The notes beneath the pieces are model-generated. The model worked only from the letters and a program-made list of their open reading frames with translations, was not told the origin of the DNA and did no database searches. DNA of 64,000 bases from NCBI GenBank assembly GCA_009103225.1, contig RHPI01002503.1, positions 935,585 to 999,584 of the forward strand, written 5' to 3'. Positions 9,781-43,975 of the stretch are shown here, one piece after another (within the stretch, counting starts at the first letter, position 1; each line of letters opens with the position of its first letter). Source of the stretch: Chlorokybus atmophyticus. Lineage: Eukaryota; Plantae; Mesostigma and Chlorokybus algae. The position numbers and the translations under genes were made by a program.

Positions 9781-10021
9781 NNNNNNNNNNNNNNNNNNNN
9801 NNNNNNNNNNNNNNNNNNNNNNNNNNNNNNNNNNNNNNNNNNNNNNNNNNNNNNNNNNNNNNNNNNNNNNNNNNNNNNNNNNNNNNNNNNNNNNNNNNNN
9901 NNNNNNNNNNNNNNNNNNNNNNNNNNNNNNNNNNNNNNNNNNNNNNNNNNNNNNNNNNNNNNNNNNNNNNNNNNNNNNNNNNNNNNNNNNNNNNNNNNNN
10001 NNNNNNNNNNNNNNNNNNNNN
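9781..10021. other. Assembly gap (241 N)
   Basis: Run of N. Confidence 1.
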
Positions 10022-11561
10022 CCCTTCCATTTGGCAGACACCCACACCCACCGCAACAAATCTGATAAAGAGATGGTTGGGCATGTGTGCAACCAGCATA
10101 AAGCGCATGTGCAGGTGACTACCGTTGCCATGTATGCATACATGGATGGCTGACAGGGGGCAATACAGGTCAGGTCTGGTGGCATTTAACGAATAGCAGG
10201 CACATGACTTAGCTTGGTGGTCAAGTTGATAAGTTGTTGTGTTTGTAACACTGCATGTGCATGTAGGTTTGCATGTAGTAATTATCTCTTGCATTTTGTA
10301 CACATGCACAATACATAAACGAACAAGCAAAGCATTAATAATGCTGGAGGCGGGAGCACTGTCAAATCTTGATTGACTCTCCACCTCAAGCGATAAGTGT
10401 ATTACGATTGCACACATTGGTGACCTACAACACAATCATGCAATAATGTGGGTGCATTATTGCTTGATCGGATGGACGGGGCATGCATATGCTACTGTTC
10501 TGGTCCAAAGCACACACCATGCATGATGCGCTGCGTGATAAGGTGTACATGCCACTTGTGAAAACAAGTTAGAGTACCTAATGTACAAACGCTGCCTGGG
10601 AGGCTTTGCAAGTTGAAGCAGAGCCTCTCAAGTGCAGAGTCTGCTTTATTGCCCATCATCATGTTGTGAGAGTCACAGGGACATGGGTTTTATCAAGTGG
10701 CCTCGCATGCCCACCACAACCGACGCTTGCTTTTGTGCTGAGAAACCATATCATCATTACAACATGTGGCGCTCACCTGGGCGGGTGCACCTGCAGGAGC
10801 TGGCCAAATGCCAAAAATTGTATTGCCCACGTACTAGGAGACGAATTCATCCCCCTGCCGGCCAGAACCTTGGCACTCAAGGTGCCTCCTTCCTCTAAGC
10901 TGATCACAGATCGTGCACGTCATGTGGTCCAGCACAAGGGTCTGCCTGCTCCTCGGAGCTCCTTCACCTGCAGTTCTGCCTGCCCCTGTCCTTGTCTTGC
11001 CTGCCCAAACCCTTGCACTGCACATGGGAACCCAGCGCCCAAGTTCGAGTTGTTGGCTGGTTGGTTGGTTGGTTGGTAATAAGTGCTTTGCCCGTGTACT
11101 GTTGTTGCTGCTTGTTGGCCTACTCTCAATTCCATGCATTAAGCATGTACTTGACCAAGCCCAAATGAGCGCAAGTTGCTGCTGCCTGTGTAGTGACTCA
11201 ATTTGGCACCCAATTCACGGTGAGTAAATTACAACCGAGTACTTCTGGAAGTCTATGTGCATGCGGGCAATGAGCTTATGGCTGGAGGTCTAACCCTTGC
11301 CATTCTGCAATTCATTCCCCGCCATGCATTGGCATCCCACAACAAGGTTCAGGTTCACAGGATATGCCGACTGCTTCATGCTGTTGAGGGCTGCCGTCTC
11401 ACCAGATGGATACAACAGCCTTTCATGGAGCGGGGAGCTTCATCAATGGCGAAGAAGAACACAATTTCGCAGTATACCGGTACAATATCAACACCCACAA
11501 AGCTGATGCGTCCGACCATGCAAAACACCATTGGTTGCAGCAACTACTTGTGGCAAGACGT

Positions 11562-14500
11562 TCAAAACAGCTCAATGTACCGGTTTCCTATCGTGTCCCT
11601 GTTCTTCTTGCGCACGGCGTTGCGTGCCTCCTCTGCGCTGTCAAAAGTCACTGAGGCTTCACCACTAGGGCTGCCATCTGCCCGCGTGCGCAGCTTAATT
11701 GAATCCGGGATGACGGAAAAGTCTTTGAAGAACTCCATTATGTCGCTGACCTGGCATGTTCGCACACATGGAAATTAGCAAAGAAACAACCACAAGGCCA
11801 CAACTCTGTCTATCCTGCACAGCACGTTCATCATGCTGGTTGTCTGCTGCCATCTGGCTTTGTGAATTACCGTGCAACGGTAAGGTAGACCTCGCATGCG
11901 CACAGTGGCTTGAGACTCATCCATCCTTTGCGAGCCCCCTTGGTAACGCTGACCTCTCCCGCCTCCCTGGGGCCCCCAGGCCTGAGCAGCCATCTGCATT
12001 TGATACTGCGCCATGGCCGGATCTATCCCCATGGGCGTTGGCGGCATGCCCTGTGAACACGCCACACAGGTCATGCTTGTTGTCTTCTGATCAACTCGCG
12101 CAGTTATCAAGTACACATAACTCTGTCTACTATTGCAGCCATAGGCACCTGCTGCTGCATCATTATGACCATGTTTGGATCCATCACTGGCACCATCCCT
12201 GTTGCACCTATGGCCGCCAGCATCTCGCTGCAGACCACCAAAACTGGTGAGCCAGTAACTTCTGGCAAGCAAAAATATATGCGGGTGAAATAGGCACCTT
12301 TTTGAGGATCGAAAGATCTCCACATATCTTGACCCAACGTTCTTCCGGTCTCGTTCTCTCAAAGCACGCTGCAGGTACAAGAAATGTTACGGTATTTCCC
12401 ACAAAGACAACAATTTACTTGTAAAAATCTGGTAGCCAAACTTTCTGCCCTGCAACCATACCGCTGCTTCAGCCGGAGACACAAACTCTGCAAATGCTTC
12501 TCCCGTCGGTCTACCCTCGCCCCTCCCTTCATAACTGCTATACACCTGTAGGCAGGACCAGCGAGTTTGTTCAGGTGGCGCACTACAGTGTGTATGCTTT
12601 GCAGGCATAACAACACACACAGCACATTCACAGTTGTATGCAAGCTCGGCACAGCGTATTGTTGACAGCTCTGGAAGTACCGCGCGCAGGACGTGGTGAG
12701 CAACTTACCAACTGAATGCCATTCATCACGACGCCGTATCCCTCAAAAAACGCTGCCAGATCCATCTGCAAGGTCACGAGTATTTGAGCCACGTATCGTT
12801 GCAAACAACGACATCAGCAGGAACTGCAACTTACTAAGCACGATGTTTCTTTCACACAGACATGTTGTGAATCTCACAAAGTTTTTAATTGCATACCTCT
12901 GTTGCAGAGAATGGCAGTCCCCTCAGTTTGAGAACTGCGTTCTCCCCGCCAACCCCACTTACACCTGGTGCCATCATGCCTGGCCCCATTGCAGGTACCT
13001 GCAAGATGCCATCAAAAAAAAAGTGTTGCAGTTGAAGTTACAGCTGAAGTTAAGTTTTCCATATCGAAAATAGCAGCACATTGATGCCTCCTTCACTTGT
13101 TCGGACACTGCAAAACATGCAACAAGACAGATACTCAAAAGTGGGTTAACAAGTATACTCCCGGGCGTGACTTACACACCTGACCTGCACCATAAGTCAA
13201 CTGGCTAGCACCATAAGCAGCTGGTGCAGCCCCGCGCTGGCGCATCGCTTCAAGCATATCCCCTTTATTGCTTCTGAAAACCTCTATGTACCTCTGCAAT
13301 ACCAAGAGTGAGCATTTCTATCCACTCAACACAATGCTGATATTCGCACCAACCAGTTGTCCGACCAGGGCTGTGCAATAAAACAACACTGCTGAACCAC
13401 GAGTATTGCATGCAGCATCACTTACACTCCCAATGCGCTGCATGTGTCTAGACACACTGGCATGCGCGTGGTCTTCAGATGAAAACTCGACATATGCCTG
13501 ATAACAGCAGCAGCAGTGGTCAGTCCCGCCGGCATCACCCCTGCCAAGTGGTGAACACCAAGTACCACACGCACCTCCCCGCTAAATCTACCATCTGGTG
13601 TTGTGAGAAGGTAAATGCCATCTGGTACTATCTCCAGCCCCGAGAAAAAGTTGTAAACATCGGCGAGAGTTGCACTGGCAGAATCCCATCAGAATGAATC
13701 AGCAATTGCAGCATTGTGCGATAGAATTTGCATGGTGATGATGCAGACCACACACCTGTAGGGAAGACCCCGCATGCGCACTACACCTTCATAGGCAGGA
13801 TCAGGATGGCCTGCTGCCACATAGCCGGCAGCGGTGCTGCTTGAGGTGCTGACTGCTGCACCCGGCCGCGGTGAGTAACCTCCCCGCTTTGCCGCATGCT
13901 GTACGTTGGTTGAGAATAGGGTTATAATGGTTTCATCATCTTTTTGCAGTACTACATAAGCGAAAGGACATTGCAAACCTGCATGTCGCCATGTGAGCTG
14001 CGGAACACTTCAACATAACGGCGGCCCATCATCTGCCTGCAAGCACATTTTGCATATTGACTACTGGGGCAACACAGCTGCAAAAAGGAACACAGGCATT
14101 GGTTTAAACCTGTTTCTTTCAACTGCACTTGCGACATCCTGCTCGTTTGCAAACTCAACAAACGCCTCGCCAGTTGCACGACCTGTGACACATGGCCACC
14201 ATGTCACCTCAACCTGAACCTGATCCTGCAATATGCAATTAACAAGCACACAGTCACCTTGAGCAGTAACGCCTAAGATGATACCATTTGGCACTATCTC
14301 CAGCCCCTTGAAGAACTCCATGATGTCCTCCTCGGTCGCAGAGTAGGGCAAGCCTCTCAGCCGCACAACGTGAAGATGCCTGCTTGAACAAACAGAAGCG
14401 GTTGGCCACGAGTGCGTGTCTTGTTTATCCGACTTGCAGGTGTATTCTAAGTGAAATGTCAGGCGCGTTCAGTTGTCACAGCATTGCTCTTCACCTGTCA

Positions 14501-16488
14501 AATGACCCACGCCGGTCTGCACCGTTCATAGTGTACGTTTGAGGCAACCCAAACTTCTCTCGCGCAGCTAGCGCAGCAGATGTAGCAGCTGGGTCCATTT
14601 CCACGTCCTCTTTGTCGGGCCGCCGAAACACGTGGCCTGAATATTTCAAATATATGGTTACTGTCCATTCTTACCAAGTAGTAAGCATACTGGATCAAAC
14701 ACTGCAGCCACTGCCCTTTTGTTTACGCGCGTGCATGATGGTATGTGGGGGGGGGCGCGTTCAGTTGTCACAGCATTGCTCTTCACCTGTCAAATGACCC
14801 ACGCCGGTCTGCACCGTTCATAGTGTACGTTTGAGGCAACCCAAACTTCTCTCGCGCAGCTAGCGCAGCAGATGTAGCAGCTGGGTCCATTTCCACGTCC
14901 TCTTTGTCGGGCCGCCGAAACACGTGGCCTGAATATTTCAAATATATGGTTACTGTCCATTCTTACCAAGTAGTAAGCATACTGGATCAAACACTGCAGC
15001 CACTGCCCTTTTGTTTACGCGCGTGCATGATGGTATGTGGGGGGGGGCGCGTTCAGTTGTCACAGCATTGCTCTTCACCTGTCAAATGACCCACGCCGGT
15101 CTGCACCGTTCATAGTGTACGTTTGAGGCAACCCAAACTTCTCTCGCGCAGCTAGCGCAGCAGATGTAGCAGCTGGGTCCATTTCCACGTCCTCTTTGTC
15201 GGGCCGCCGNCCTTGCCATTGGCAATTAGCTTCTCATTTGGTTCGCTTGTGAGTCCCAGAACTGTAGCATGTCAAGGACCCCAGCAGATGCATTTGTGCA
15301 ACTGACAAAACGCATTGAGATGGATACACTCCAGCATAGCCTGCAGCGAGTTGACTTGCGGAGGAGCTTGCGGGTAGCATATCCTGAACTCCGCAATGAT
15401 GTTGATATACTGCCCATAATGAGGGGCCAGACTAATCTCTGCAGGAAAATGAAGATTAGAGAGGGGTAAAACTGGGTGCATGCATGCAGTCGTGACACAC
15501 TTCTTACACCACTGCTCAGACCTTTCCCAGATGCTTCCGGCCGAAGCAACTCGTGCATTGGTGCGGATGTGGCTGTGTCGCCGCACGGTGTCAGCAATGC
15601 AAAGAACAAAATCTTGCCACAATGATGCCAACGTATCAAGGAGCGCAGAGAGGCAATGTGCACAACATGCATATGCATGTGTCAACCACTGCTACGGTGA
15701 GCAATGCTGGCTCACTGCCGGCACACCTGTCGCGAGGCTGAAAGACTTTGGTCCGAAGCTGCTGTACAAGTAGTTGTCCAACTGCACAGCAACACGCATT
15801 CATTGTTAATATGCAGCACAACAAACCAGACATACATATGCAACAACCCTCCCCACTTACCTGCTGCACGGTTTCATGCAACGAGCCTGCATTCAGCAAT
15901 GCAGGATCTTGGGTCCGTATCCAATCCGGCCTCACTAAAAGCTGCTTCTGGTCGACCATAGATGCTGTCTGCATGTCCACAACGCCCCAAGAAACACACC
16001 CAATCTCGCGCAACCCCGTATCATCTTGAGTAGCCTCCAAGTCCAATACAACAATGTAGTCTGCAAGCAAGGTAACCCACATTGGTGCCATCATCGCAGA
16101 CAAGCCAGCGACCTGCCTGCAGCCTTCTGCTGTAAAAGATGACGAACGAGCAACTGACATGTGCAGTTCTTGCTGGTAAGACTGTTGTCACACAGCACAA
16201 TGCATGACCATCCCAAGCAAGAAAACATACAAGTCTCTCAGTGTCAACGCAAATAGCTGTCGCAAGCTGTTGGCAACAGCTGTAGCACCATGCGTCGCAT
16301 CGGGATTGACGCACAACACTTGTCTTGCCAGCTAACATGTCGCAAACCATGCTAATACACCGTAATCGTGCAACGTAGCGTTAACGGTAGTGTCAAGCAA
16401 CGCGACACAATGCACTGGCGAAGAATATGCTCGCACCTAATCCGGCCAAGTCCGCTGGCGCTCCGGCCACAGAGGCGGCCGCAGCCAT
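11562..16488 (-). CDS. ESRP/Fusilli-like RNA-binding protein: N-terminal DnaQ/DEDD-like exonuclease domain plus four quasi-RRMs (hnRNP F/H type)
   Basis: ATG 16488 (MAAAASVAGAPADLAGL) splices in phase to DYIVVLDLEAT...LLVRPD, then SFSLAT, LLRPEASGK, EFRICYP, GHVFRRPD. Four qRRMs begin RLRGLPYS, RMRGLPYS, KLRGLPFS and RMRGLPYR, each ending in an RY[IV]E[VIL]F motif. TGA at 11562. Confidence 0.85.
14462..15209. repeat. Tandem repeat, 292-bp unit, about 2.6 apparently identical copies (starts 14462, 14754, 15046), each carrying an exon of the ESRP-like gene; ends at a single N (15210)
   Basis: Direct comparison of the copies; exon 14495-14636 encodes GHVFRRPDKEDVEMDPAAT...RRGSFD. Confidence 0.95.
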
Positions 16489-16738
16489 GCTACCCGGCGG
16501 CGCACAGAAAGGCGGTGGAGCTACCTCACCGCATACGCTCCGTCCTCCTCAGGGGCGCCCGCCCCGCCCCTGCATGGCGCCAAGAGCACCGCCACCGCCG
16601 CCCAGCCTCCCGCCGCCGAGAGCTACTACACAGCCGTAGCTGCCCCTTACGATACCCGTTTTTTCGCCATGCAAAATACCCACCAACAAACAGAGAATAT
16701 CGGACTTGGTATCCAAATGGTAACTTACGCGATACTTG

Positions 16739-16746
16739 AAACCCTA
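16739..16746 (+). promoter_or_regulatory. Telo-box-like AAACCCTA in the divergent ESRP-like/Rab2 intergenic region; others at 24911, 25102 and 62083
   Basis: Exact motif seen; function inferred from land-plant telo-boxes. Confidence 0.35.
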
Positions 16747-17014
16747 GATACCAGCGGGGAAAACGGCCTTCCGTGGTGAAGTTGCCACCTCAGCTGACGC
16801 GTGGCAGTTGTGGGCGGGATCGGCGGCGTGGGCGGCGGCAAGGGCGGCGGAGAACGGCTTCTGGTTGGAAAGTTTGGTTCTGTTGAGGTGGCGCTTGGTG
16901 GAGGAGCCTTGCTTGGGGCATTCCTTGGACTGCTTGGCACCTGGGTGCGGGTACAGTCGTGCTGGGGTTTGAGGAGGTCGTCGTTCCCCCTACCCGGAGC
17001 CACCAGCGGCAGCC

Positions 17015-18668
<1,654 letters not shown>

Positions 18669-22368: not shown

Positions 22369-24394
22369 TCATGGGAGGTAGTCGTCGTCTCGGCATATTG
22401 GCGCGGTTATGCTTAGTGTCTCTGCGGCTTTGTCCCACTTCGCTGAGCCCCTTTTGCAGTCTACTTTGTGTGGCAGTGGCAACGATAATCGGCTGCACCA
22501 ATTACACAAACAGCTTGTAGTGAGCAGGAGAGCAGGTGAGATGTATGTGTATGTGTGCTACATAAGCAGTATGCAGGGCGTACTATGAGGGTGAGAGGAG
22601 CCGTAGGTGCGTGTCTGTGACATCCAAGTCAAGTTCCGACATCGCCTTTGTGCCCGGTAATGACAAGCGAACAAGTAACTCCTCACAACAGTGCGTCGAC
22701 GGGTCTTTACCAGCCTGCGCCAAAGTGCGTGTGTTTGAACAACACAAGCCAAACACATTTGCTGTGCTGTTGGGCGGCGCAGAAAAACTGACTGCGTGTG
22801 TGCGTGCATGCGCGCGCGCGCGCGCGCGTGAGCGCGCGTGTGCTTGTCTGCGTACCAGCCCTAGGTATGCGTCTTGAGCTGAAACCGCTTGCTTGTACAG
22901 GAACTCATACCTGCCGCGATGGCACATTGGTTTTGTTGCAACTCATGTGTGGTGCATGAGTAACGTGTGTGTGAGGAGGGGCAGAGGCTGATGAGCAAAT
23001 CAACCACCAGCAGGAGTGCAAAACTCAGAGGATGCGCATGCATCTGAATCACTGTATGGAGATTTTTGCTGCTTGAGCGCAGCAAAACTGCTCTCACTCT
23101 GAGACAACTGAACCACTCTATGCACAGCGTGCTGGTCCTGGACAACGTTACACGCTACCATTGTGAGCGAATCTACGCAAATGAACACACGGTGTTTGTT
23201 ACTCACTTTGGCCTGCGGCGGTCATCGTACTCGTCATCCACGTCAAGGCTGTCCGCGGGTACTTCCCCCTCATCCCAGATGTCCCTCGCCCCGAGCCTAC
23301 GCGCTGCACATACAACCCACTCTTTTGCACGTTGCTTGTTGTGGCAGTCTGTTCTCTTCCTTGAGCCACTCAAACATGCTGTTCCAAAGATGAAAAGTGT
23401 GCAACTGACCCTTGGGCAGCTCCTTCTTTGCGCGCGCTGCGGCCGCGGCTGGCGTTGGACCTGATGCAATGATTGTGGCTGGAGTGGGCTTGTCGTCCTG
23501 TCGTGCGTGTGTTCCACATTACTTGTTGCACAACTGTGTCAGTCACTCACTACGCTGCTGATAAGCTGTTGACGGGAGTGAAGTTTGCATGGAACAGTGT
23601 GCTAGCTCCGAGTGTGCGAACCGCGTTGGTTGTTTCACAACTGAACGAAGGGAGAAGGGTGGTTCATATGTGCACACAAGCGCGTGTGCACATATGGACA
23701 TACGTGCGTGTGCGTGTACATCTGTGCATGCGTGCGTGTGCTTGCACGTGTACGTTCGGGNNNNNNNNNNNNNNNNNNNNNNNNNNNNNNNNNNNNNNNN
23801 NNNNNNNNNNNNNNNNNNNNNNNNNNNNNNNNNNNNNNNNNNNNNNNNNNNNNNNNNNNNNNNNNNNNNNNNNNNNNNNNNNNNNNNNNNNNNNNNNNNN
23901 NNNNNNNNNNNNNNNNNNNNNNNNNNNNNNNNNNNNNNNNNNNNNNNNNNNNNNNNNNNNNNNNNNNNNNNNNNNNNNNNNNNNNNNNNNNNNNNNNNNN
24001 NNNNNNNNNNNNNNNNNNNNNNNNNNNNNNNNNNNNNNNNNNNNNNNNNNNNNNNNNNNNNNNNNNNNNNNNNNNNNNNNNNNNNNNNNNNNNNNNNNNN
24101 NNNNNNNNNNNNNNNNNNNNNNNNNNNNNNNNNNNNNNNNNNNNNNNNNNGCGGGGGGGCTGCGTGTCTGTGTCTGTGTTTGTGTCTCTATCTGTGCGTT
24201 CGTGCGTGCTATGTGACTGGCGATGGACCTTGATGTTGCAAAGTCCCCGTATGTGTCAGTCTCATGGATCGATTGCTTGATTGCCAGATACCCAAAAACA
24301 AAAGAACGCATTCCCCTACCAGATGATCTGATTGGTCATCGTGGCCTGGTGGCGCCAGAAGCTTTGCCAACGCTTCCACTGATGCAAAATCCAT
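22369..24394 (-). CDS. DNAAF6: Dynein axonemal assembly factor 6 (PIH1D3/Twister); spans an assembly gap
   Basis: MDFASVEALAKLL, DIWDEGEV, PKYEFLYKQAVSAQDAYLGL, KDPSTHCCEELLVRLSLP, ELDLDVTDTHL, YRLSLPLPHKVDCKRGSAKWD; downstream exon phases consistent. Confidence 0.9.
22795..22842. repeat. Intronic (TG)/(CG)n tract including about (CG)8
   Basis: Seen directly. Confidence 0.9.
23761..24150. other. Assembly gap (390 N)
   Basis: Run of N. Confidence 1.
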
Positions 24395-42789: not shown

Positions 42790-43975
42790 ATGGAAGAAAA
42801 CTCGGTGCCCACCTCAAAAGGGGAGAGCTCAGAAAAAGAGCAACTTTCCCGTGAGGAGGAATTTCCATCCATGGAAGATATTCCGAATCCGGATGATGCA
42901 CCTGATGAGTCTCAAGCTGCTAAAGCTGCGGAAGCTTCAGTGGATGATAGATCACCTTCCATATTCCCTGCGTTTTCTATTCGCATGACACAGCAGGACT
43001 TGATGGAGCATTTTCTTAGCACCTATGATCAGGACCCTCGTGAGGCAATTGTCTCATTCGTGAACTTTCTCTTCCTATTGGCAGAAAAAGTTTCAAAGCT
43101 CACCACCTTTATGGGGCGAGATTGGGAGGGGCAGATGGGTGAAGGCAAACGTGTTCTGAATATGATCGAGCGTCTGCAGCGTGCTGACGGTGGTCCACCT
43201 GTTCAAGCACTTGCTCGTCCTGCCGAGTTTGTTCCCAACAAGCAAGCGGCCATCTTCGACTGGCTTGTGAAGTTGCGACACTATGTCAACTCCCTTCACA
43301 TTTTTAAGGAGGGGAAATTGCGTGTAGCTGAGTTGCTGATCCCAAACGATGCTTTGGCAGAGTGGTACCGCCGTAAGCTACGGGATACCAACCTCGGGCG
43401 GGAAGTAAATCAGTTGTGCTTGTTCATGGAGCAGCGCTATGGTGGCGCAGATCCTGCCCAGGTTGCTCGCAACCAGCTGCACAACCTGCGTCAGAACGGG
43501 CGTCCGGTTCAGCAGTATATCCAGGATTTTCAGTCGTTTGTCAGCAAGATCAATGCTGGCAAACTACCTATCAGTGATGCTGATCAGCTGGATATGTTCA
43601 GGCGTGGCTTGGACACAGATCTCGTGCAGCATGTGGCCGTCAACCCCGCGAGTTTGCAAGAGTGGNTAAGAGAGGGCCTCGACGGATTTACCAATGCTGA
43701 TGCAGATGGTTGCTGCTGTGGACAGTGTAAAACGCTCTCACGCCAACATGCAAACCACGGCAAAAGAGGCAGCCCCGGTTTCAGCTGCAAAGCGCCCGGC
43801 CACTGGCAACAAACCTTTTGTGAAAAAGGCGAAACCATCTCATCCTGCTGGCCCCTACAATGCGGCCAAATCCATCATCACTTGCAGTTTCTGCAAGAAG
43901 ACAGGTCATGGGGAGGCTACGTGCTATGCAAAACAGAATGCACAGAAGGCCAAGCAGCAGAGAGAAAAGAAATAG
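42790..43975 (+). CDS. gag: Chromovirus gag; apparent frame change next to the N at 43666; ends at TAG 43973-43975
   Basis: ARNQLHNLRQNGRPVQQYIQDF retrotransposon-gag motif; CSFCKKTGHGEATC zinc knuckle in the post-N frame. Confidence 0.85.

Follow-up and report, generated by a model that had tools for sequence, protein, structure and literature searches.

A gene on the minus strand of a 64,000-nucleotide (nt) stretch of the Chlorokybus atmophyticus genome (contig RHPI01002503.1, positions 935,585 to 999,584; this whole stretch is referred to below as the window) encodes what we identify, at a probability of about 0.78, as the orthologue in this alga of the ESRP/Fusilli family, with a pseudo-nuclease N-terminal domain followed by four quasi-RNA recognition motifs (qRRMs). 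ESRP has been studied as an animal, epithelium-specific splicing regulator. A first-pass annotation, made from the letters of the window alone, had proposed an ESRP-like DnaQ-fold domain joined to hnRNP F/H-type qRRMs in an alga, and this identity held up: both parts lie on one transcript, and the top match of the N-terminal domain is human ESRP1 (PDB ID: 7WRN).

The locus is a real, expressed gene of a streptophyte alga, and its exonuclease-like and RNA recognition motif (RRM) exons share one mRNA. Three public sequencing runs each supplied one spliced contig (X1, 2589 nt; X2, 2508 nt; X3, 2367 nt), and each single contig covers all exons, bridging two halves that might have proved to belong to separate transcripts. 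Every contig joint listed between positions 11500 and 16500 of the window reads CT..AC in plus-strand orientation and hence GT..AG in the orientation of the gene; after normalisation of the joints to GT..AG, the model comprises 21 exons whose open frame of 709 codons specifies a protein of ~709 amino acids (aa) (ATG at 16488-16486, stop at 11564-11562) within a transcript that extends from ~16591 to ~11206. The exon lengths of this model reproduce the coordinates of X1 exactly (103 nt of 5' untranslated region, 2130 nt of coding sequence and 356 nt of 3' untranslated region, 2589 nt together), with exon 2 at contig positions 156-355, exon 11 at 1043-1185 and the last exon from 2047. The RNA nature of the runs themselves was only guessed; four runs of one organism in the run index contain 9-32% of the sampled words, and exons alone would give roughly one third. 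As the contigs lack the 20 canonical introns, they derive from spliced RNA.

The copy in X3, from a run under the same organism label, is ~1.4% divergent, with 30 substitutions and one inserted base in the 3' untranslated region, an indication that one name covers distinct strains or cryptic species. There are 28 coding differences, and because 24 of these are synonymous and the four replacements are confined to linkers (aa 215, 326, 468 and 630), purifying selection appears to act on the protein in both its halves. Exon 2, where the nuclease-like domain begins, carries synonymous changes only.

The gene is annotated in public data as jgi/Chlat1/6352/Chrsp44S05910 (P0001, 726 aa), which the transcript-based model matches everywhere but in the middle. 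Database, fold and profile searches used exons or the stored proteins of Chlorokybus (P0001) and Mesostigma viride (Mv06498, P0002); the transcript-corrected model, with X at an assembly gap, was used locally only, for the frame check, the alignment and the tree. The minus strand from 16488 to 11562 holds many short open stretches, including four copies of an RGLP ... GEAxV ... RYIEVF pattern, and the motifs first quoted for the locus (VVLDLEAT, LLVRPD, SFSLAT, LLRPEAS, EFRICYP and GHVFRRPD) all occur in its translation where they had been placed.

When residues 1-160 of the annotated Chlorokybus protein were searched against the PDB with phmmer, the sole match was human ESRP1 (7WRN, E-value 1.8e-5), which was also the sole match of residues 1-205 of the Mesostigma protein (3e-5). 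A profile built from ten non-animal N-terminal domains ranked 7WRN first among solved structures (2.9e-30), ahead of ERI2 (6.6e-25), ERI1 (1.2e-24) and ERI3 (5.6e-24), with further matches to CRN-4 (1e-16) and the PolC exonuclease (1.7e-8). A two-sequence full-length profile retrieved animal ESRP1, ESRP2 and Fusilli at E-values of 1e-74 to 1e-97, mostly with 89-94% query coverage, and the MAFFT alignment of the domain with ESRP N-terminal domains runs end to end. An AlphaFold2 model of the Mesostigma domain (mean predicted local distance difference test score 83, predicted template modelling (TM) score 0.78) was compared with known structures using Foldseek, which returned ERI3, ESRP1 (7WRN), ERI2, ERI1 and CRN-4 at the top and then RNase T and TREX, with TM scores of 0.65-0.70 to the ERI-type exoribonucleases. 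These profiles identify the domain, of ~190 aa, as a homologue of the human ESRP1 N-terminal domain and a more remote one of ERI1, ERI2, ERI3 and CRN-4, and together with the model they give it the DEDDh fold and a place in the ERI clade, closest to the N-terminal domain of ESRP.

Other searches recovered less of this relationship. Pfam found no domain in residues 1-160 of the Chlorokybus protein or 1-200 of the Mesostigma protein, and on single exon pieces it found RRM_1 and no N-terminal domain family; its RNase_T family was weakly matched in nine of the 17 N-terminal domains scanned. Exon 2 alone had no match in the PDB, and an exhaustive representative search with this exon (67 aa) gave four matches, namely its own model at 100% identity (residues 18-84), the Mesostigma protein next, and two weak ones. 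A word search with the Mesostigma N-terminal domain returned itself only, and one made for ERI1-3 with the alignment of the N-terminal domain alone returned nothing at E<=1e-5.

Quasi-RRMs and the likely role in RNA processing

Pfam recognizes four RRM_1 stretches in the annotated protein (E-value 1.1e-42), and the loop signatures of hnRNP F/H are kept in the four qRRMs (RGLP-aromatic, GR-x-S/T-GEA-aromatic-V and RY-I/V-E-hydrophobic-F), the first of which reads VVRLRGLPYSATEEDIMEFF ... GRATGEAFVEF ... RRYVEVFRSS. Mammalian ESRP1 has three RRM matches only, and the first-pass annotation had accordingly set four qRRMs in the alga against three in animal ESRP. The count of four stands, but as a contrast with animals it holds for mammalian ESRP1 and not for Daphnia Fusilli or hemichordate ESRP, which have four, one of them lying at the very C-terminus. 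The Chlorokybus qRRMs are collinear with those of arthropod Fusilli, and the final coding exon of the Chlorokybus gene matches the C-terminal RRM of Daphnia Fusilli with 52% identity (E-value 7e-20), which exceeds its match to Fusilli RRMs 1-3, and both proteins end at RYIELF. Four RRM_1 stretches are also found in the Parvularia, Pelomyxa and Paratrimastix proteins and in a Cyanophora-like one. Because the protist members, Fusilli and hemichordate ESRP have the fourth, C-terminal RRM and mammalian ESRP1 has three, we read four qRRMs as the ancestral layout, from which the three-RRM form of vertebrates would be derived.

From the retained loops and by analogy with the animal proteins, the four qRRMs would most likely clamp G-tracts or single-stranded RNA rich in GU, and the protein would regulate pre-mRNA splicing or processing in the nucleus, whereas the epithelial role of animal ESRP is impossible in a small sarcinoid alga. 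When residues 245-726 were compared with solved structures, the qRRMs of hnRNP H/F were the best match (3.5e-41), followed by Glorund, GRSF1, ESRP1, RBM12 and RBM19. This match is far better than that to the RRMs of ESRP1 (~1e-16), and in the RRM part the nearest relatives are hnRNP F/H-like proteins of plants; it is therefore conceivable, although we are doubtful of it, that the protein is a general G-tract binder of the hnRNP F/H type, engaged in constitutive processing, G-quadruplex handling or cytoplasmic control like that exerted by Glorund or GRSF1, and not an ESRP-like splicing regulator. The architecture is of the ESRP/Fusilli type, although architecture does not fix cellular role. The proteins hnRNP F/H, GRSF1 and Drosophila Glorund belong to the same quasi-RRM class but have three qRRMs and no exonuclease-like N-terminal domain, whereas the Chlorokybus protein has four in addition to its ERI-like domain. 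A general binder would differ from the favoured ESRP/Fusilli orthologue in role only, the two overlap, and there is no direct evidence against it.

The fourth qRRM also matches RRM proteins in ribosome structures (9g6k chain Lz, mL182, and 9i05 chain Xk) at E-values of ~1e-16 to 1e-17, which suggests that ribosomes have co-opted qRRM-like proteins as components.

Catalytic positions of the N-terminal domain

The five catalytic positions were mapped through a HMMER alignment of the family profile to the ERI1 structure 1W0H, and the residues at these positions were read on a MAFFT alignment of 18 N-terminal domains. In 1W0H they are the Asp and Glu of D-F-E in IIDFEAT (ExoI), the Asp of GSWD (ExoII), and the His and second Asp of HCGLDD (ExoIII), which we take to be the catalytic D134, E136, D234, H293 and D298 of 3'hExo. 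Two of the five DEDDh residues are present in Chlorokybus. The Asp and Glu of ExoI are kept in VVLDLEAT, the ExoII Asp is replaced by Pro (ATSAPMH), the ExoIII His falls in a deletion that shortens the loop, and the ExoIII Asp is replaced by Lys. The alignment thus bears out two earlier observations, that the acidic ExoI residues are kept, unlike in vertebrate ESRP, and that ExoII lacks its Asp. It had also been supposed that ExoIII might lie in the assembly gap at position 15210, which proved wrong: the 23 nt missing from the assembly, hand-translated in frame, give VIARLQAD (...AMLEFLGLTSEPNEKLIANGK-VIARLQAD-GHVFRRPD...), which corresponds to the helix after ExoIII and contains no H-x4-D, and ExoIII is absent.

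The remaining family members retain other combinations of these residues. Mesostigma has His and Glu at ExoI (H-x-E) and Ile at ExoII, the Cyanophora-like protein has Asp at both ExoI positions and at ExoII, Parvularia has Asp and Ala at ExoI and Asp at ExoII, and Chromera has Asp and Glu at ExoI and Lys at ExoII. Of the non-animal proteins compared, only those of Chlorokybus and Chromera keep both ExoI residues, which are lost in all six animal members aligned; neither the ExoIII His nor the ExoIII Asp is kept by any of the 18, protist or animal. ExoII and ExoIII of the Chlorokybus domain are degenerate like those of animal ESRP, but its ExoI D-x-E is intact and its ExoIII loop shorter.

With the ExoII Asp, the general-base His of ExoIII and the ExoIII Asp gone, only the two ExoI carboxylates are left, and two-metal 3'-5' hydrolysis should not work. 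We suggest that the domain is a pseudo-nuclease, very probably inactive as an exonuclease; its function more likely lies in structure or in the binding of protein or RNA, which is also the assumption made for ESRP. On the simplest reading of the alignment, the common ancestor of the aligned lineages already had an inactive domain, whose leftover acidic residues decayed at different rates, in which case the intact algal ExoI would be a relic or a structural feature and not evidence of activity. ERI1 (3'hExo), ERI2, ERI3 and CRN-4 have the same fold, with profile homology at E-values of ~1e-24 over ~190 residues, and share the D-x-E-A-T of ExoI, although a single-sequence search with the Chlorokybus domain does not reach them. 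The missing ExoII and ExoIII residues and the fusion to four qRRMs place the Chlorokybus protein outside the active ERI1-type enzyme family.

That the kept ExoI pair confers residual metal-dependent activity, as slow or alternatively wired 3'-end trimming or as metal-mediated capture of RNA 3' ends, seems improbable to us, and we give as little credence to the fuller proposal of an active or alternatively wired 3'-5' exoribonuclease, tethered to G-rich RNA by the qRRMs and intermediate between ERI1 and ESRP. The intact ExoI Asp and Glu, unchanged in the second strain, the match of the non-animal profile to ERI1-3, and a His and a Glu two to three residues past the ExoII position (SAPMHE) are what such activity could build on. 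They are set against the loss of three of the five DEDDh residues, a His at the ExoI Asp position in Mesostigma, which is the closest relative, and a family in which no member keeps ExoIII. Were the activity real, the protein would be a living functional intermediate on the way from ERI-type nucleases to the inert ESRP domain, guided to G-tracts by four qRRMs. The earlier suggestion that the protein could be an ancestral form between ERI1-like nucleases and ESRP was too strong, given the absence of ExoIII throughout the family, the two residues kept here and the H-x-E of Mesostigma.

Distribution and descent of the family

The full-length profile recovered collinear non-animal proteins from Parvularia (Nk52_evm46s554), Pelomyxa schiedti, Paratrimastix pyriformis and Chromera velia (A0A0G4HBR1), a protein labelled tig00000229 that is probably from Cyanophora, judged by naming style only, and several environmental sequences. 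The Pelomyxa and Paratrimastix proteins are named ESRP2 by NCBI. The Pelomyxa, Paratrimastix, Parvularia, Chromera and Mesostigma proteins have the same layout of N-terminal domain and qRRMs as Chlorokybus, with four RRM_1 stretches in most, and each lineage has a different subset of the former catalytic residues. Members of the family are present in Amoebozoa, Metamonada, Alveolata, Holomycota, a probable glaucophyte and the basal streptophytes, and the family looks ancestral to eukaryotes. It is an old, patchily kept eukaryotic family of probable pseudo-nucleases and not a novelty specific to algae. The Mesostigma model ends in poly-Gln (…QQQQQQQVGL) where Chlorokybus continues to a linker and the fourth qRRM, and may be truncated.

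When the qRRM region (27 rows, 472 columns, no row left out) was analysed in a quick maximum-likelihood search, the animal ESRPs formed one clade (support 100) beside Pelomyxa and a Trinity-assembled relative (94), and two glaucophyte-like rows came out together (99), while a Dionaea row on a long branch took no settled position. A streptophyte group (83) contained Chlorokybus as the first branch, then Mesostigma (87), and then Spirogloea with two liverworts and two ferns (99). The closest relatives over the RRM part, with 45-49% identity to the Mesostigma query, include proteins of Riccia (R1flu_006055), Calypogeia, Adiantum, Ceratopteris and Spirogloea (SM000232S07929). These hnRNP F/H-like proteins of land plants and zygnematophytes are 440-516 aa long and begin directly at qRRM1, without the N-terminal domain, in all gene models sampled. 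We infer, from gene models only, that the lineage leading to Zygnematophyceae and land plants lost the domain, which survives in the two earliest-branching streptophyte algal classes. On this comparison, the hnRNP F/H-like proteins of plants look like ESRP-family orthologues whose N-terminal domain was lost after Chlorokybus and Mesostigma had branched off. Six land-plant and Spirogloea proteins in our set (P0007, P0008, P0010, P0013, P0015 and P0018) may be such N-terminally truncated orthologues.

The origin of the ESRP family has previously been placed before the metazoans on the basis of choanoflagellates (PMC5703972), and a Ciona isoform without the exonuclease domain has been described (Burguera et al., PMC5703972). 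Our literature search found no paper on the 7WRN structure, on algal ESRP-type proteins or on non-holozoan ESRP. The full architecture, a probably inactive ERI-like domain and four qRRMs, now extends to basal streptophyte algae, a probable glaucophyte, Amoebozoa, Metamonada, an alveolate and a nucleariid, and with such a taxonomic spread it is probably as old as eukaryotes. What is new is a basal-streptophyte member of a known ancient family, together with a corrected model of its gene and a modest evolutionary insight into plant hnRNP F/H-like proteins; these are useful for annotation and for the question of what the conserved pseudo-nuclease domain does, and change the working model of no system.

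Several points weigh against the identification of this gene as an ESRP/Fusilli orthologue with an inert N-terminal domain. The non-animal profile prefers ESRP1 to ERI1-3 by only ~18 bits in a ranking of profile scores, and the structure was modelled for the orthologue in Mesostigma and not for the Chlorokybus protein itself. The alignment of the Chlorokybus ExoIII region spans a deletion and eight hand-translated residues, and the ExoI D-x-E, unchanged in two Chlorokybus strains and kept in Chromera, makes some metal-dependent function possible. The RNA specificity and splicing role are extrapolated from animal hnRNP F/H and ESRP, and support for the streptophyte grouping is moderate (Shimodaira-Hasegawa-like approximate likelihood ratio test values of 83-88, quick search).

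Animal ESRP1, ESRP2 and Fusilli share the order of an ERI1-like, catalytically degenerate N-terminal domain and then qRRMs (7WRN comprises the N-terminal domain and qRRM1), but overall identity to them is only 27-32%. This low identity bears on whether the gene is a contaminant or was recently acquired from an animal or protist by horizontal transfer, a notion that draws on the family being best known from animals and on the full-length architecture being missing in sampled land plants, and that we regard as very unlikely: the gene sits in a 64-kb algal contig beside host genes and has 20 short GT..AG introns, it is present in transcripts of independent Chlorokybus samples, including the divergent strain, and its qRRMs group with Mesostigma and land-plant proteins and not with animals. 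Contamination and horizontal transfer were rejected on this host-gene context, the introns, the independent transcripts and the placement in the tree.

Gene model, assembly gap and neighbouring sequence

The public model Chrsp44S05910 is wrong in its middle, owing to a probable assembly error that combines a repeat and a gap; it omits the exon at 15211-15261 and reads a repeated exon twice. A single N conceals the end of exon 6, and each contig supplies the 23 nt that the assembly lacks between 14637 or 14929 and 15211. The repeated exon is preceded in the genome by an acceptor (TATTCAG), and the gap therefore also conceals the start of an intron. Abutting the gap is a tandem array in which each 292-bp unit consists of exon 7 (GHVFRRPD...) and intron pieces. 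Each contig contains one repeat copy, which in X1 and X3 was placed at 14786-14929 and in X2 at the identical 14494-14637. Because the copies are perfectly identical, the gap abuts them and the end of an exon is missing, the array is probably an artefact of assembly or gap closing; the other single-N gap (43666), examined for a similar repeat as a sign of a systematic artefact, showed none.

A gap and a repeat lying exactly between the two halves, in a model demonstrably wrong at that place and corrected with runs that are stored as contigs and only guessed to be RNA, could mean that neighbouring ERI-like and hnRNP F/H-like genes were merged by gene prediction or in chimeric contigs; we consider this extremely improbable, as the junction is spanned, in a single open frame that the 23 missing nt preserve, by three contigs drawn from two studies, the contigs lack the GT..AG introns and so come from spliced RNA, and the same fusion occurs in Mesostigma, Parvularia, Pelomyxa, Paratrimastix, Chromera and animals. 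Two separate genes were likewise rejected, the contigs bridging both halves in one frame. The features of the gene are listed in Table 1.

Table 1. Features of the ESRP-type gene, with positions in the window
Feature	Position	Strand	Basis
Coding span	11562-16488	-	Spliced contigs X1-X3; all introns GT..AG, frame open
Exon 1, coding part (aa 1-17)	16437-16488	-	Donor GTGCGA; X1 depth, bin 16343-16500 exactly 64 nt
Exon 2 (aa 18-84), start of ERI1/ESRP-like domain	15861-16060	-	100% identical to P0001 18-84; transcripts
ExoI VVLDLEAT in exon 2, then LLVRPD	Asp codon 16043-16041, Glu codon 16037-16035	-	Translation
Exon 3 (aa 85-102), LDNYLYSSFGPKSFSLAT, strand towards ExoII position	15727-15781	-	Transcripts and model
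Exon 4 (aa 103-119), ATSAPMHELLRPEASGK, Pro at ExoII Asp position	15522-15572	-	Transcripts and alignment
Exon 5 (aa 120-156), EISLAPHYGQYINIIAEFRICYPQAPPQVNSLQAMLE	15328-15438	-	Transcripts and model
Exon 6, assembled part (aa 157-173), FLGLTSEPNEKLIANGK, runs into gap	15211-15261	-	Contigs; X3 joint 15259-15328
Single-N gap, conceals 23 nt of exon 6 (~8 codons) and 5' part of next intron	15210-15210		Transcript contigs
292-bp tandem array, 2.6 copies, 100% identical, abuts gap	14462-15209		Repeat analysis
Exon 7 (aa 182-228), GHVFRRPDKEDVEMDP..., end of N-terminal domain and linker	14495-14637	-	Transcripts, model, alignment
qRRM1 (aa 229-313), exons 14258-14379, 14110-14182, 13979-14036	13979-14379	-	Pfam, transcripts
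Linker and qRRM2 (aa 314-456), exons 13756-13898, 13575-13674, 13426-13497, 13180-13293	13180-13898	-	Pfam, transcripts
qRRM3 (aa 457-560), exons 12897-12998, 12709-12765, 12462-12545, 12298-12368	12298-12998	-	Pfam, transcripts
Met/Gln/Gly-rich linker and first strand of qRRM4 (aa 561-647), exons 12149-12227, 11871-12050	11871-12227	-	Transcripts, model
Last coding exon (aa 648-709), most of qRRM4, ends ...GNRYIELF, then stop	11565-11750	-	Pfam RRM_1, E-value 6.6e-9, exon alone

Elsewhere in the window there are runs of N at 9781-10021 (241 nt) and 23761-24150 (390 nt) in addition to the single N at 43666; these show that the contig is a scaffold in which several gaps remain unclosed, and gene models that cross them may need to be checked against transcripts. 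A Rab2-type small GTPase gene lies at 17015-17620 on the plus strand, its start at ~17015 being ~430 bp from the 5' end of the ESRP-like transcript (~16591). The two genes are divergent and may share a promoter region, and the GC content at 16500-16999 is 0.62.

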